Positions 1,486 through 64,000 of a DNA stretch of 64,000 bases are shown piece by piece; position 1 is the first letter of the stretch; the number at the start of each line of letters is the position of its first letter. The notes beneath the pieces were generated by a model. It did no database searches. It was not told where the DNA came from and worked only from the letters and a program-made list of their open reading frames with translations. Location: NCBI GenBank assembly GCA_964199315.1, contig OZ116699.1:28458001-28522000 (forward strand). Direction: 5' to 3'. The translations under genes were made by a program, and so were the position numbers. The stretch comes from Orbicella franksi. Taxonomy: Eukaryota.

Positions 1486-4056
1486 AAAGATCTTTGTGTT
1501 TTCATAACCCCCACAAGTATGCAGAGAATTTTATTTGTTAAGCCCAGTTTAGACTAGCCACATAACGACATAAACAGAACAACAGAAGAAGGACGTTTTG
1601 TCGTTATGTATGCAGTGTGAACATCCATAATGGCATTAATAGCAACATACACAACATAACAGCATAAACATAACGACACAAGGAGAAAAGGGATCTTTTC
1701 CTTATGTCGATGTTCACATTACCGACATAAGCGATTGCGTCGTTATGTTGTTGTGTCGCTAGTGTGAACCAGGCCTCAGTGATAACACGCGTGTGACATG
1801 TGCTATCTCGCGAGACCACCCGGAACGAGAAGGAAACATTTACGATGTGATTTACGCCATTTATAGCTTAAAATCTTTAAGTTACCACCAGCCCTCTCAT
1901 TCGTGACTTGCACATTTCTGTTACATCCGTCACGCGGCTGTTGATTTGCAGAGGAGATAGTAGGACTGAAAATTGAGAGACATATCCTGGACCAACAAGC
2001 AATTTTGCCTCCGACTGCAAAAATTCCGCGGTATTGATCAATACCGTGGCAGTTACCCTCTATGCTACGTGGGTTAGTTGTCTCTTGTAGTGCGCGACCC
2101 GACGATGAGAAAGGCAGAGAGAAAGCTACTTTTTTCATTTATTCAAATTTCTCTAATCCAACAAGAACAGAATAGTTTACTCCAACCATGTACAAAACGA
2201 AAGAACAAACAGAAATTAAACACATTAAAAGAATTTATTCCACACTAGTCCTCTTATCAAGCTTTATTACAGCAAAATATTTTCGGCATTTTAAGACCTC
2301 CGTCTCTTTAAATCCTGATATAAAAAGCTCAGGTTCATCCTACCGTCGGGGCTAAGATATCCGGTTTTTGACAAGTTATAGTACAGACCCCTCCAACATG
2401 GACCTAAAATACTAAAGTGGACTGCTGTTTCCTAGTAATATCACTACAACTGCTTCCTTAACTCTATAACCTCTCTCCTTCTCTGCACATCGAACAACTA
2501 TTGATTTTTTTTTCTCACTGTTTACCGAGGTAGATTCATGTAGGTTCATCCTTGTTTAGTGTGCCTAATTAGTCCGCTTGGGTTAAATTCCTTGACACTT
2601 AAATAAACGTTATTATCTTATCTTATAGGATACTTCTGTGAACGCTGCTATACGCAAAACACTTTCAATCTATCTAAATGATAAACTTAGTTCTTTTTAG
2701 TTAAACGTGTTTAAAGCTTTGATGTAAGAGATGAGAACAAATCCTACAAAGGAGTTACAATTCTTAATCACAATAAACCTAAACAACGCAAAGTAATCCG
2801 GAATGGCTTTGGTTTAAACTTAGCTACTTTCTATGATTGGCTCAAACAATCAGATGCAGAACTAAAGCCAATCAAGGCTTGGCCGAGTGTTTTTATTTGG
2901 AGGTCCCCGCTATTAGTCCGTTTCCTTGTTTGCGTCTGTTTTCATTTACGGTAATTGGCCATTGTAATTGCTTTAGTATTGGTTTTACGACGTTCTAAAA
3001 ACCGCTCTAACCAACACGAGCAACAGAGCAGTTATTGGTTGAGCAGATTTGCATCTGATTGGTTGAATAGACGGCGCGAGTCTTTTTTAAACTAATCACG
3101 GAGCGTAGTTAAACAAAACCAACGCAATTCGAATTACGTTCAACTCTCAATATAAAGATCGTTTAAACTGACACCCGCAGTCTTTCATTCAGGTCTTGAA
3201 ATCTTGCCCACTGATGTAATATTCTCGGACATTTCTTTATCTGTTAGCTCATATACGTACTTAGACTAATTAATACTACGTACAAGTTGTTGTTACTCGC
3301 ATTATGATCATGACATGAACTCGTATGAAGTATGGCGCTCAAAGAAATAAATTAAACTAATAAGTACATCAAAGTTTCATGCCAGTGTTTTGATAATTTG
3401 GCTCCAGCAGCTGAGGGCTTTACCTTTAAAGACTTTAAATCTGAAATAAATTGACATAAAAATATTTGTGAAAACAGTTGCTTTATGATTAGGGGATTAA
3501 TATTCTGCTACTATTCTAAAATACAAAACGACACTTCAGTTTGTAATACATGTTTTTGAGACATGTCACTCAATATACTGAAGATATTACACTTCCTTAG
3601 GGTCTTATTTCAAATTTCGCGGTTTTCTTTTTCCAAATTCCGCGATTTAACTAACGTTAATTCTCTATTATTTAATTTCGTGCTAATACCATTAGAAATG
3701 CGCCCTTCTCTTATTTCGCGCCACTATTTTCACACCTTTCAGGCGGAGGGAATGAGTCCAGTTAATTTTTTTTATTTCATTATTTTAAGGAGAAGTGGAT
3801 CGTAATAGAGGGGGCGCTTATTTGAAATTACGATGCATAATACATCAAATCTTTTCATGGGACAGCCTTGAAAACATGGCGAGAAAACTCTGTGATGGAG
3901 AAGGGTCCTAATCCAGTGGTCAGCTTGTTTAAAATATTATAAATCATAAATGCTAGGTACTCGTATAAGCTTCTTTTCAAGGAAAATTAAGTTAGCAGCC
4001 GCTCGGGTAATTATGCCAGTAATGCTAAATGTCATTACATTTTCGGTGTTGGTTTC

Positions 4057-7000: not shown

Positions 7001-10000
7001 TTCTCTTATGCTAAATTTTCAACCTCTCCTACTTATAATTATGGAACTGATTTAAAGGCTTTGAACTAGTTATTTATCAGTAACACCGAAAAAAGAGTTT
7101 AATGGAGTGTTTGAAAAAAGGGTCAGGAAGATTTACATTTGGTGAAATTAATTTTTGTCTTTAAAAGGCTGTTTGATTTTAATTCATATTTTTAGTGAAT
7201 AACAATTAAATGAACTAAGGCTACTAATATGTATGTCATCTATTCGCTTCCGTTTCAAAACTATAATGAGAATCGACAGTGTAAAAGTACCTGGCTGTCC
7301 AGACCAAGGTTAAACAACATGAAGAAAAAAAGAAATGCCCAGATTTGTGGAACAGGCAGCTGTTTGATTCCTTCAGGAAACGCCATGAACACCAGGCCTG
7401 GTCCTAAATATTGAAATGATATTGTTACTTGAGTACAGGTCAGAGAGGAGGTAGGGTGGTGTGATAATAAGAACAACCCTTTGAGAGAAATCGGATTTTA
7501 CTAGCAGCCACGACCCCCCTGGCGGCTACTCAGAAGACAACGGCGATTTAAAAACGGGGTATATTCACCTACGAATCTCGCGAAAATCCAAATTTACTCA
7601 ATTGTCTTTCACTAGAACTATCCTAAAACTGAATATGTTAGACAACGTTCAACTCGAAAAAAAAGCTTTAACAATTTTGCCGTCGTGGTTGGCGTTGTGA
7701 CAATTTTAGTCTAATTTATACTTTGATGTGAAATGACCAATTGAAAAGGTACTTTCTTTTCTTTCTTTCTTTCTTTCAAATTCCCTTCTGCGGAATAACC
7801 TGATACACATTTGCATACCACGGGGGAAAATAAGGGTCATCACAGAAAGGCAATCAGTGTCTAGAAAAATAGTGGTTCCATTCATGTCTACAAGCAGGAT
7901 TTACTGTTTGTTAATTAAATAATTAAGTTCATTAACAAGCAGGAATTGTCTGCCACATGGAATTTGTGCAGTTTAATTTTTTTATTTGATATTAGATACT
8001 CAACTACAAGAAACAAAAGAAAACAAACTTTCGTGTCATATGTTCAAAACAATACGCGAGACACAGCAGAGATTTTACCTCCTTTGACGGCATTACCAAC
8101 TTCAGTTTTGAGTAAGCGTGCCATAAAACCCATCATGCTGAATACGGTAAAGCCCGCGAAAAAACTGGTCATACAATTGATCAATGAAACCACTATGCTG
8201 TCCCTAAAATAAGAGAACAGGGAATTCTTTAGTGAAGACGATCGGAGTTAGCCAAAATCGCACATTATGTTGTCTACCATGGACTAAAGAACTCCAGCAA
8301 TTTTAAAGTGACTAAGGCCGCGTCCACACTACGCTATTTTAAAACTTAGCGTTATTTTTACGTTTAGGCCAACCGTCTACCATAATCCGTCACGAAAACG
8401 GAGCTTTTGGGAAACGCTCTTCAAACCAGAGGAATTTGAAAACGCTGGCATTTCGTTTTCATGTGGAAAGAAAATATTTTGAAAACGGAGCTTTTCGAAA
8501 ACGAACGATGGCGTCAAAATAACCATGTAATTTCCCTGACGGAGTTTTCCCCAAACACAAATCGAAAATGACCGGTGATTGTTTCGTTTTTAAATTCCTC
8601 CCGCGTAGTGTGGACGGAAAACATTTGATGCGTTTTCAGAGTGGAACCTCCGTTTTCAAATTCCTCCAGCGCAGTGTGGACGGGGATTGAGCGGTTGCAA
8701 ATTAATCGTCTAAAAAAGGCATTGACCTTTTATCTATCGTCCCACTCACGCTCATATCAATTACAGAGGGAATTATCATATTTAAACCGTTTTCCTGTCA
8801 CTGATTTCACAGTTTTTCTTTGTATTGAAATAAAATGTTGCTCAGTGATGTAAACCATATGTTATATTTAGTTGTTCGTTTTAAAAGTGGCGAAAGTTGT
8901 CATGCGAATTTTCAACGTTTAAAACCCGAAACTGTTCAAACAAAAAATAAATTTTGCTTGGTTACTGAGTTTTTTGACAAGTATCTTTACGTGGAAAAAT
9001 CTCTAAAACCTGTGAAATGGACGTTAGTAATGTTTCCCTTACTTTTCACAGTTGTTGTTAAACTTGTTGAAGCTACTGTAGGTAAGGAGTCCTCCCATTC
9101 CGATACTGAGTGAGTAAAATATCTGACCAGCGGCTTGCACCCACACCTGTAGAGATCATTAATGCCGAGAACAAGAAGCAAGACCCATGTTTGCTTTTTC
9201 ACGGAGAAATACAGGAAATCAAATGAAGCACCAGAGATAGACCAGCTTCAATTACTATTGCAAAGCTAATAAGGGACGATAAATGAAAAAATAAAAATAA
9301 TATTTTCCAAAACTGCCATTCTTCTAAATAGAGTGTATTTGGTCTTGTCACGCGTATTAGATATCAAATGACATTGGATATATATTGTATCTTTTGCTTA
9401 GTTTTACGAAAAAAAGTAAGTGAAGTTTATGGCCCTCTCAATGTCTTTCAAGAAAGCATTACACTAGTAAAAAAAAACTGTAAAGTAGTAAAGTTACTGA
9501 GATCTTTCAGATTCTTCTCCTAGCTAAGCCGACGGCTTTAACAGTCTAGGGGTTTGTACACGTTTCTACTGTACCAGTGAGCAGAATGGCACTCTTACCT
9601 GCGGATCTTTAAGTCTGGAGAAATCAGGCTTCAAGTAGAAGAGGATCCCGTCACCGGCTCCCTCTAAAGTAGCACCACGAATGAGAAAAATGAACAAGAC
9701 CAGGTATGGAAACAAAGCAGTGAAGTAGACAACCTGGAAAGCAAGACACTGGCGTTTCAGTTTTATATCTCACTGGTCAATGTACGCCGTATCAATCGCA
9801 TCGTTTCTCATTCTGTTGAAAGAAAGTGACTTTTACTACATGCGACCAAAAGTATACTAGCAACTGAGAGTCCTCAGCTCAGAAATGGTTGGTTTTTTAA
9901 TGTCAAGACAACGTTTCTATCTGACGGCAAGTGTTTCTCTGGAATCTCTTCTTCTTTGCTTTTCTTATTGAATTAATTTTTTTTGAGAAAAGAACAAAGC

Positions 10001-60900: not shown

Positions 60901-61529
60901 GAATGTAGACAAGTGAAATAATTTATGGCTGGCCTTTGGTAGATCGGTATGAGAATGAGACAAACTAAATCCAGTTACAATAGCGGTGAAAATGTCATGG
61001 CTCGTGTTACACTAAGCATTTAGATCAACTGCTTACCCTTAACCGTTTTTCTTTTTGCAAAATGTAGAAATTGAGTTGCTGGAACACTCTCTTCTGTCAA
61101 TATATTGCGTGAATAGTTTTTGCAAACGTTCACTTGATCTAAGCCGCTCTTGGTACGTTGCATGCAAGAATGACTAATCTAGGTCATTTTAAAAACTAAT
61201 AAAACAGTGAGCGATGACATATGAAGAACTTTCTAGCGCTGAATCCTGGGCCAGATCTTGGGCCTTGTAGTAGAATAAAAACTAAGGGGATGTCTTGCTC
61301 AGCAAAATTGAATCGACTTGTGATTTAGCAAACCGGACAGCTACATTGGACAAGCAAATCCCGAACGTACCGTACGCCCGGGATCGTACGTAGAACAAAC
61401 GGCATTCTCTGTCGATGGGTGTTTGGAAATCGCTAAGATGATCATGATCTTTCAGTCATGGATTTTCCATTCGGCCACCAACGAAGTAACACGTGCTCTG
61501 ATATTAATTAACTAATATTGGTGACTGAT

Positions 61530-63284
61530 GGCATACTGTAAAATATAGACTGGAGTGGACTGGAGTGGACTGGAGTGGACTGGAGTGGAGTGGACTGGAT
61601 TTGTAAAACATGGAGTGGATTTGTAAAAGGTGGATTTGTAAAAGGTGGATTTGTAAAGGGTGGATTTGTAAAAGGTGGATTTGTAAAAGGTGGATTTGTA
61701 AAACGTGGATTTGTAAAGGGTGGATTTGTAAAACGTGGATTTGTAAAAGGTGGATTTGTAAAACGTGGATTTGTAAAAGGTGGATTTGTCAAACATGGAT
61801 TTGTAAAAGGTGGATTTGTAAAACATGGATTTGTAAAAAATGATAATTTAAAATTAAAGCGCGCGACGAGAACAGTACGGAATTTTTTTTTCGCGCTGAT
61901 CAAATCGGAAATCGTGCAATAAAAGCTAAAGATTGTGGCACCCAGGAAACAATAAACGCGACAAGAATGTAACAGTATTGAGAGAAAACCGGATGTTATC
62001 CTACAATATAATTAGCCAGAAGTTTGTGCAAGCGGCTAACAAAATCAACTGTTATTTAATTCCATAAATCTTTGCTTTTAGCTATTGCTACCCTGGCTAC
62101 CAAAGGTCTTTGTCGGGCGTCGGGATACTTCTTTTCGTTTGAGTATTGGCACTGTTGACAGCTTGGCGCTGCTGTCAGTTACATGTATCCATAAACAGAA
62201 AGCTGGAGTGAATGTCTTGACCTTTGAACAATAAAGTCTTGCATGATTTAAATTCTGGCGCGAAAGTTTACACGGCGCGCTCGAGATCGAGATGGCAGCT
62301 TTCAAGCTTCCATCTCTTTCTCTTAAAAAGCGAAAACGGCAGTTATCTTTGCCCGAGTTTGGGTGAAATTCTATAAACCTAAAGGAAGAAATAGGAAGCG
62401 GTACTTTTGGAACAGTTTATTTGGCTAAATGCACCGACGAGGAACAATGTGTTGTTATTAACTAGTGTTTGAGAAATTTACAGTCATTCCTTCAACAAAT
62501 AAAATGTTGAACAAACGTGTAGCACCGGCTCAAGCAATTCATTTTCTTGATCGGAATTAATCCGTTTCTCACCAAGAAGTGTTACAATATTGCATTTATA
62601 TACTTTGTGATAAAATATAGAGGAATTATAATTCTTTGTATGCTTTCGTTACAGTTAATGTTGAAGTGAATTAATCGTAAAAGTAAAGAATGAATTGTTT
62701 GAAATGTATGTAAAAGTAAATGCATGTAAAAGTAAAGAATGAATTATTTGGAATATATACCATTGATATCCTGTTTGCTCGAAGGATCTGCAAACAAAAT
62801 AAAGTTTATTGTTTTACATTTGTTTTACAATTTTTTTTACAAATCCACCTTTTGCACAAACTAAAAAAGCAAAGATTTACGGAATTAAATAACAGTTGAT
62901 TTTGTTAGCCGCTTGCACAAACTTCTGCCTAATTATATTGTAGGATAGCATCCGGTTTTCTGCTACGTTCTTGCCGCTTATTGTCACCTGGGTGCCACAA
63001 TCTCTAGTTTTTATCGCACGGTTTCCGATTTGATCAGCGCAAAAAAAAAAAAAATCCGTACTGTACTCGTCGCGCGCTTATCATTTTTTACAAATCCATT
63101 TTTTAAAAACCCACCTTTTACAAATCCATGTTTTACAAATCCGCGCTTTACAAATCCATGTTTTACAAATCCACGTTTTACAAATCCATGTTTTACAAAT
63201 CCGCGTTTTCCAAATCCATTCCATATTTTACAAATCGAGTCCACTCCACTCCAGTCCACTCCAGTCCATGTTTTACAATATGCC
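61530..63284. mobile_element. Non-autonomous foldback DNA transposon, Mutator/MULE (Rehavkus-like), 1755 bp
   Basis: Perfect 9-bp TSD GTGACTGAT at 61521-61529 and 63285-63293. Termini GGCATA(C/T)TGTAAAA. Inverted arms ~61530-62081 and ~62861-63284 contain 10-bp (GGAGTGGACT) and 15-bp (TGGATTTGTAAAAGG-type) tandem units plus ~220 bp of unique inverted sequence. Confidence 0.88.
62292..62465 (+). pseudogene. Protein kinase N-terminal fragment (subdomains I-II) carried inside the foldback element
   Basis: In frame from ATG 62292: MAAFKLPSLSLKKRKRQLSLPEFG*NSINLKEEIGSGTFGTVYLAKCTDEEQCVVIN*. Contains the GxGxFG loop and VYLAK. The VAIK-like strand reads VVIN. Internal TGA at 62364. Confidence 0.75.
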
Positions 63285-63432
63285 GTGACTGATCATTCTG
63301 TTTGTTTATCAATAGTGGCGCCTTTTTGCAAGGATATTAACTAGGCAAACGCAAATAAATTCCCATTGCTGCTACAATAATCGTTTTCCCAGGCGTTCGA
63401 TAAGAGGCTATGATTTGTGTAGTTATTATGAG

Positions 63433-63686
63433 TTAGTATATACCACACAAGTGAATAGTGCTTTTCACGCGCTCTGATTGGTTAACTCGGGGGTGATGAG
63501 CAGGTACTATTTACCTCCGAGCGGCTGGAGCGAGAGATTTTAAAATTTCTGACCGCTTGTCGCACATAAAATAACGTTTTGGTCCGCTCATTATACAGCT
63601 TGTGTGGTATATACTAAAACAATTATTCACCTCAGTGTCGGTGAAAGTAATGGATATTTTCCTCCACTTCGGTGAATAATTATTAA
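63433..63686 (+). mobile_element. HINE/Helentron-like element, family 1, short copy
   Basis: Same subterminal inverted repeat (63434-63451 / 63599-63616) and a complete 3' hairpin AACAATTATTCACC...GGTGAATAATTATT. Confidence 0.65.
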
Positions 63687-64000
63687 TTATCAGACTCACT
63701 GGCCACATAGGCTTTTTTTAGTTTTTAGTTATTTCCTAGGCGAGAAAATTCTAATTATTAATCATATATTGCAAATATTGTCTGGTACTGATAGGCACAG
63801 CAGGGAGTTGATAATTAAAAAGATATATTCTTGATTTACGAGCAATTTCTTAGAGCTTAATTACAAGAAAAATGTTGGGCAACAAGTAATGATGTCTGAT
63901 AACGATCAATAAAGGAGAGGGAGAAAAGATGGCGACAGGTGCATTTACCCATAATTCGTAGCGCACGAAAACCTTAACAACGCTCATAAACCCGTCCAGA

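Follow-up and report, generated by a model that had tools for sequence, protein, structure and literature searches.

The 1755-bp element

The window, as we call the whole stretch of DNA analyzed here, comprises 64,000 nucleotides of the genome of the coral Orbicella franksi (C2:28458001-28522000, in a host assembly of 497 Mb). At window positions 61530-63284 it contains a 1755-bp element with GGCATA termini, flanked by an exact 9-bp duplication, GTGACTGAT. The chance of finding the same 9-mer at both junctions is about 4e-6, and the element was inserted as one unit, at a 9-bp staggered cut of the target. We consider it likely that it belongs to a small coral family, now extinct, of foldback-type Mutator-like elements (MULEs), as a non-autonomous member that has suffered an internal deletion.

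The two inverted arms are unequal in length (551 bp on the left, 61530-62080, and 420 bp on the right, 62865-63284) and have a composition of the foldback type: each comprises a 14-bp terminal motif, tandem repeats of 10 bp and an array of 15-bp units (core of 12-13 bp), in addition to inner unique sequence (Table 1). The unique parts, about 220-240 bp long, pair at 89-97% in ungapped blocks, or at 81.6% when gaps are counted. By Tandem Repeats Finder, the left 15-bp array extends from 61615 to 61838, with 14.9 copies and 91% matches. A consensus of 267 units, taken from the arrays of eleven copies, gives the unit as T-GGATTTGTAAAA plus two variable positions, mostly GG, CA or CG, at which the commonest base reaches 50-54%; the conservation of the core is partly forced by the selection of units. 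The in-register units of the 1755-bp element itself show the same conserved core and variable spacer positions, and paralogous copies have from about 14 to 29 units in each arm. By analogy with Muta1 (see below), the 15-mers are putative transposase-binding sites. All of the structural observations of the initial annotation, which had been made from the letters of the window alone, have been borne out, including the extent of the element, its duplication, the GGCATA ends, the repeat arms and a further solo unit.

Table 1. Features of the 1755-bp element (window positions) and further copies of the family with both ends
Feature	Position	Strand	Remarks
Target-site duplication, left copy, GTGACTGAT	61521..61529		same 9-mer flanks orthologous copy L081
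Left terminal motif GGCATACTGTAAAA	61530..61543	+	14 bp
Left 10-bp subterminal repeat, GACTGGAGTG x5.2	61548..61599	+	
Left 15-bp-period array, 16 units	61597..61843	+	core GGATTTGTAAAA plus 3-bp spacer; putative transposase-binding sites
Left arm, unique inner part	61840..62080	+	241 bp; inverted copy of 62865-63080
Non-inverted interior	62081..62864	+	91-94% identity to three or four other family copies
Kinase-ORF start remnant	62292..62462	+	Pkinase profile match
Solo 15-bp unit	62833..62856	-	just inside right arm
Right arm, unique inner part	62865..63080	-	87% identical to left arm
Right 15-bp array, 9.2 copies (10-11 core units)	63082..63219	-	30-bp higher-order period
Right 10-bp subterminal repeat, x2.9	63240..63268	-	
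Right terminal motif, TTTTACAATATGCC on the + strand, GGCATATTGTAAAA read inward	63271..63284	-	near-complement of left motif
Target-site duplication, right copy, GTGACTGAT	63285..63293		
Complete copy on C11	C11:4973872-4974415		544 bp; duplication ATGCCAAGT on both sides, perfect
Complete copy on C3	C3:20429106-20432621		3516 bp; duplication CTGGTGTTT on both sides, perfect
Metagenome copy L078	L078 2239-4170		1932 bp; duplication TTGTAGTGT / ATGTAGTTT, 7/9

Copies of the family and their target-site duplications

For the unique arm sequence, the genome contains 15 matches, distributed over 10 chromosomes, at 74-97% identity. A 25-bp terminal pattern with up to 2 mismatches is found 47 times, against 0 for its reversed control, and the paired 15-mer 190 times, against 0 in the control. 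Matches to arm, terminus and 15-mer collapse to about 12-15 family loci, plus sister families with a common terminal motif. Copies of the family diverge by 6-13% from the 1755-bp element, and the right half of its interior (62462-62864) is present in five family copies only.

Three complete copies in the assembly, the 1755-bp element among them, have perfect 9-bp duplications, each with a different sequence. For the truncated copies on C12, C10, C15, C4, C7 and C11, a second copy of the flanking 9-mer was not found. The initial annotation had taken the element for a complete foldback-type DNA transposon with 9-bp duplications, and had named as signs of error other copies without such duplications, or arms that are separate insertions. 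Neither came to light: the other complete copies in the assembly carry perfect 9-mers of their own, and the reading stands.

Sister families of MITEs (miniature transposable elements with inverted repeats), 1.3-1.5 kb long, have the 25-bp motif GGCATA..TAAAA....GACTGGA. They are represented by L032 (C2:17123590), L038 (C4:17328219), L034 (C3:26768010) and L041 (C5:22909932), and in two of them the best-fitting duplications have 10 bp (9/10 in L032, 8/10 in L038). In the GCCATATTG subfamily, the 25-bp motif is subterminal and the inverted repeat reaches at least 30 bp further out.

Some copies have peculiarities of their own. The interior of the C3 copy (L046 501-4016) differs from that of the other copies and contains a repetitive open reading frame (ORF) with FQRVSKGF-type repeats; a short stretch of this copy, reading ...FKPTETFQYTHFTSCHPPGV..., was taken as a retroelement fragment, and Pfam gave nothing there. 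The C12 copy (L047 1395-3220, C12:6591265-6593090) harbors a nested insertion of 1.8 kb with inverted ends CAATAGG(G)TTT... and an apparent 3-bp duplication, GAC, which is a different DNA transposon inside the family interior. The ORFs in the metagenome contigs L078 and L080 amount to just a TPR protein, outside the element.

Age of the insertion and change of the arrays

Public contigs of three differently labeled corals contain the left junction, one contig in each case extending from the flank across the duplication, covering the element's first 14 bases and ending at the start of the 10-bp repeat. In one of the three corals, a contig also spans the right junction, with zero differences. 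An empty-site allele with a single GTGACTGAT, which the initial annotation had envisaged, was not seen, as no contig joins 61529 to 63294 in the contig sets of the three corals (contigs drop rare variants).

An orthologous insertion of 1626 bp is present in the JGI metagenome contig L081 (5104-6729), with GTGACTGAT on both sides. The flanks of the two insertions are 97.9% identical over 4.7 kb, and the elements about 97% identical. Because the same insertion with the same duplication occurs in a related coral, between flanks of such identity, the insertion is old, and predates the divergence of the two related corals. The left arm of the ortholog has 9 of the 15-bp units, compared with 16 in the 1755-bp element, and the right arm 10, compared with 11. 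Since the left array differs to this extent, the orthologous pair directly shows that array length was altered after insertion, in agreement with the changing 15-mer copy number that had been anticipated from the window, and it shows that much of the asymmetry between the arms arose post-insertion. The family as a whole looks long inactive, because its copies differ by 6-13% and the kinase remnant described below is interrupted by a stop codon.

A kinase gene start in the interior

The interior of the element holds a remnant of a protein-kinase ORF. From its ATG, the stretch 62292-62462 reads MAAFKLPSLSLKKRKRQLSLPEFG(stop)NSINLKEEIGSGTFGTVYLAKCTDEEQCVVIN(stop), with a glycine loop, GSGTFGTVY, and VVI(K). 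It retains the ATG and about the first 57 codons of a kinase ORF, with stop codons at 62364-62366 (TGA) and 62463-62465 (TAG), and matches the start of the Pfam kinase profile (positions 2-29). The C12 copy has this ORF uninterrupted over 62 codons, up to ...QCVVIKK, with the kinase lysine present. Homology between the C12 copy and the C2 and C10 copies stops right after the QCVVIKK region, and the C12 copy continues to a kinase C-lobe (L047 3712-4044). The N-terminal kinase peptide is also found, at 55% identity, in a diverged, one-ended relative (C7:19510797) that has the same arms, some 700 bp into its sequence, and a remnant of the kinase start lies near the end of the sister MITE L041. 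Because the kinase start recurs in the C7 relative and in L041, it would be an ancestral component rather than a recent capture.

The kinase belongs to a narrow clade. When the C-lobe was compared with 1.84 billion representative proteins, only 142 were matched at E <= 0.001, and the nearest relatives of the remnant are intronless ORFs that adjoin MULE transposase ORFs. The apparent kinase cargo in the interior is probably what remains of the beginning of a gene that the parent element itself carried.

Kinase-MULE proteins and gene pairs

Two long predicted proteins of the clade from ENA assemblies, P0092 (1131 aa) and P0095 (1591 aa), can be aligned along three regions, namely the kinase C-lobe, a middle region and a transposase region. 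The middle region has conserved Cys and His residues (NACSFLS ... DTH) and is peptidase-like; the transposase region carries the MULE motifs DPTF/DTTF, TDGE/TDAE, C.H..N and N.E..N. P0092 has weak Pfam matches to MULE and Transposase_mut, both on the transposase region; in P0095 there is a SWIM finger, and PHD gave no match. P0141, another long member of the kinase clade, does not show a MULE part.

Kinase and transposase also occur as neighboring genes. At L083 (C3:15752000-15761999), a MULE-type ORF of 516 aa (7693-9240) has, 4 kb upstream on the same strand, an intronless kinase ORF of 593 aa (1900-3678) that shares 31-40% identity with the C12 remnant. The 516-aa ORF aligns with the MULE ORF of L072 (E 1e-41) and has the same motifs. 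A possible left end of this element is at about position 511 (GGGGTGTCTACAAAACGAAGACC), followed by 7-bp repeats and an array of four 94-bp units; the right end is beyond the stretch that was fetched. A second pair of kinase and MULE transposase is located at C10:5267273-5274743.

L083, P0092 and P0095 share with the coral family a kinase of the same narrow clade, which is N-terminal to, or encoded upstream of, MULE transposases. However, identity to the coding remnant is only 31-45%, and the termini and repeats of the kinase-MULE locus L083 differ from those of the family. Because of the low identity and the different termini and repeats, they would seem to be relatives of the lost parent and not its partner. 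Our literature search on coral foldback elements and kinase-MULE fusions returned nothing relevant, and the combination of kinase, peptidase-like part and MULE transposase was not found described.

Assignment to a superfamily

The Mutator superfamily is the best assignment for the element, because of the 9-bp duplication (8-11 bp in Mutator elements, typically 9), inverted arms of more than 400 bp (over 100 bp in many Mutator families), phased 15-bp repeats and the link between kinase and MULE proteins, which adds indirect support at the level of protein. Several observations weigh against it. Genome searches with the termini, arm sequence, 15-mers and interior of the family identified no autonomous element, contrary to the expectation of the initial annotation that a partner would exist elsewhere in the genome. 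At least 17 loci match Pfam MULE and at least 41 match the transposase part of P0092, and no such match lies within 10 kb of a family terminus, 15-mer array or copy. The arm and interior sequences were found in non-coding family copies only. Long copies encoding a MULE DDE transposase, which the initial annotation had proposed to look for, are lacking among the family copies: only in the 3.5-kb C3 copy do paired ends lie over 2 kb from each other, and its interior consists of other repeats and has no transposase. When all family loci were compared in translation with the MULE ORFs, there was no match. As no partner is known, the superfamily is assigned from structure and from a kinase link at only 31-45% identity. 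The match of P0092 itself to Pfam MULE (20 bits) falls under the curated cut-off of 27.6 and is backed only by homology to genome ORFs, among them L063 above the cut-off (35.5 bits) and L072 slightly below it (27.2 versus 27.6). Finally, Merlin elements make duplications of 8-9 bp as well, and matches to the Merlin-type transposase (PF12762) are more numerous in the genome (at least 68) than matches to MULE.

These last points raise the question whether the element is a non-autonomous member of the Merlin superfamily, mobilized by an IS1595-like transposase. Some PF12762 families have copies with 99-100% identity, implying recent activity, and one PF12762 match lies 10 kb from the C15 copy of the family. 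However, none of the 68 matches is inside a family copy, and the one young family that was inspected has ends unlike GGCATA and no repeat arms. The best-fitting 10-bp duplications of the sister families L032 and L038 suit MULEs better, and the kinase remnant has its links among MULE rather than Merlin proteins, all of which makes a Merlin origin improbable. We give hardly any credence to a local inverted duplication, or a locus for hairpin RNA, with a short flanking repeat that arose by chance. One strand can indeed fold into a very stable hairpin, as the initial annotation had suggested, with a predicted energy of -797 kcal/mol (-411 +/- 8 for shuffled sequences) and 390 pairs between the arms. 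The terminal 91 nt alone give no fold. Yet the Rfam search matched no family, and zero polyA reads fell on the element in the part of one run that was covered (raw reads, about 12 in 100 read), so that the hairpin RNA itself has found no backing. Moreover, copies are dispersed over at least 10 chromosomes, and the complete ones have 9-bp duplications of their own that differ from each other, which refutes a local origin.

A Mutator derivative could also have acquired the kinase piece from a host gene and amplified it, in the manner of Pack-MULEs. MULEs typically capture gene fragments, and derivatives of Muta1 carry host fragments (PMC5225508). The kinase piece is carried by only 4-5 of about 12 family loci, and the interior of the 3.5-kb C3 copy is quite different. 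Against capture, the assembly has no parent gene of high identity; outside the family, the best N-terminal matches reach 64% and 55%, and the best match to the C-lobe 43%. The fragment begins exactly at the ATG of the ORF and has a similar distance from the arm in the diverged C7 relative, and the kinase clade is narrow, with members fused or adjacent to MULE transposases. We regard capture as unlikely, though not to be dismissed lightly.

The reading that we prefer, a non-autonomous foldback-type MULE, suggests the following model. A MULE DDE transposase would have moved the element in trans, binding the phased 15-bp units and cutting at the GGCATA ends, similar to Muta1 of Aedes. The kinase piece in the interior would be the retained 5' end of a kinase-first gene of the parent, and the rest of this gene, encoding the peptidase-like part and the transposase, may have been lost by an internal deletion just past the lysine codon of VVIK. 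In this scenario the family would have kept both arms, the 5' leader, about the first 57 codons and some 3' sequence. The element is presumably immobile now, because a matching source of transposase is absent from the assembly. On balance, we lean toward the more specific proposal that in the family we see what is left, internally gutted, of a coral foldback-Mutator lineage with the gene order kinase, peptidase-like part, transposase, in which the kinase start is ancestral.

Taken by itself, the element is ordinary, a fixed and decaying non-autonomous DNA transposon of the kind that is recorded in routine repeat annotation. It does, however, provide a clean cnidarian case of the end architecture of Muta1 and Foldback, with an orthologous pair in which the change in array length can be seen directly. 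The kinase piece that looks captured more probably represents what is left of a gene of the transposon itself, and this bears on counts of gene capture and of kinase genes in corals. The small GGCATA-ended elements of this coral would be tied to kinase-carrying Mutator elements in the same genome and, if the proposal is true, small MITE-like derivatives would mark the past spread of kinase-encoding transposons.

Comparison with known elements

In Muta1 of Aedes aegypti, the terminal motif is 10 bp long and there are nine 12-bp repeats with spacers of 3-4 bp, and Muta5 has nine 15-bp repeats; both make duplications of 8-9 bp, and their non-autonomous derivatives keep the arms with a variable number of repeats (PMC5225508). 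Both are active mosquito MULEs, and Liu and Wessler (2017, PMC5225508) place Muta1 among the type 2 Foldback elements. They are the closest match to the coral family, with which they have in common the duplications, a terminal motif followed by phased subterminal repeats, and derivatives with heterogeneous interiors. The coral arms, however, are 3-4 times longer (420-551 bp compared with about 150 bp), and add an outer 10-bp repeat and some 220-240 bp of unique inverted sequence. The coral family further differs in its host, in the start of a kinase gene in its interior, and in that no autonomous copy is known for it.

The Foldback (FB) elements of Drosophila have a 9-bp duplication and unequal arms of short tandem repeats, the unit of which grows inward. 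The coral element resembles them in its 10-bp units outside, longer units inside and unequal arms, a likeness of described architecture. FB repeat units are not known to be related in sequence to those of the coral family, and FB arms usually consist almost entirely of repeats.

The initial annotation had called the element MULE/Rehavkus-like. The first half of this label is retained, as Mutator is the best assignment, but the second is not. Rehavkus elements, reported from arthropods and annelids, are defined by the PHD finger of their transposase (Dupeyron et al. 2019, PMC6446971). They make a 9-bp duplication and have arms of up to 400 bp, with tandem repeats, inside the inverted termini or beside them, that vary in number between species (Repbase; PMC6446971; bioRxiv 10.1101/2024.12.02.626372, a study of Tribolium satellites). 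The 9-bp duplication and the terminal minisatellite are thus common to Rehavkus and the coral family, but they are shared with other MULEs and do not discriminate. Among the related kinase-MULE proteins the finger is of the SWIM and not the PHD type, and the coral family itself is without a transposase.

Neighboring and additional repeats

A high-copy interspersed repeat of about 258 bp occupies 63433-63690, 140 bp to the right of the element, and is the sole part of the stretch with polyA reads. The genome contains at least 520 candidate copies of it, which are 87-94% identical and reach a very high contig depth in sum; a search with ARAGORN gave no tRNA-like head.

Several candidates for a link between the family and MULE transposases were considered and set aside. 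L037 and L039 have the terminal motif of the family and matched DNA beside a MULE-domain remnant (L067/L069); this connection was dropped, as L037 is armless and the piece in common is perhaps a repeat of other origin. GGCATTCC, once taken as a terminus of the L069 element, is a variant of the internal 20-bp repeat unit of L069. The four long MULE ORFs of L070-L073 and the multi-copy MULE L074 have no flanking inverted repeats with family ends within 10 kb.

Other elements with MULE or Merlin-type coding sequence were observed in the same genome. L069 (1768-2414 and 6174-7567; C10:6138767-6144566) contains a degenerate MULE-domain remnant between inverted arrays of a 20-bp repeat (32 and 70 units), and arrays of this repeat are also present on C1 and C15. 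A second MULE-domain element, L052 on C13, has arms of about 125 bp made of a 21-bp repeat. A very young family of 2347 bp, represented by L075 1069-3417 (C15:9243468-9245816), has an intact IS1595/Merlin-type ORF of 346 aa and at least 6 copies with 99-100% identity; no terminal inverted repeat is visible at the boundaries of the copies. At L071 7098-8047 (C15:3010597-3011546), 1.5 kb from a MULE/SWIM ORF of 717 aa, lies a 950-bp MITE with perfect inverted ends of 30 nt that start with GGCATGTACTAAAA, subterminal short repeats and a 9-bp duplication matching at 8/9 positions (AATTTTTCG / AATTTTTCC).

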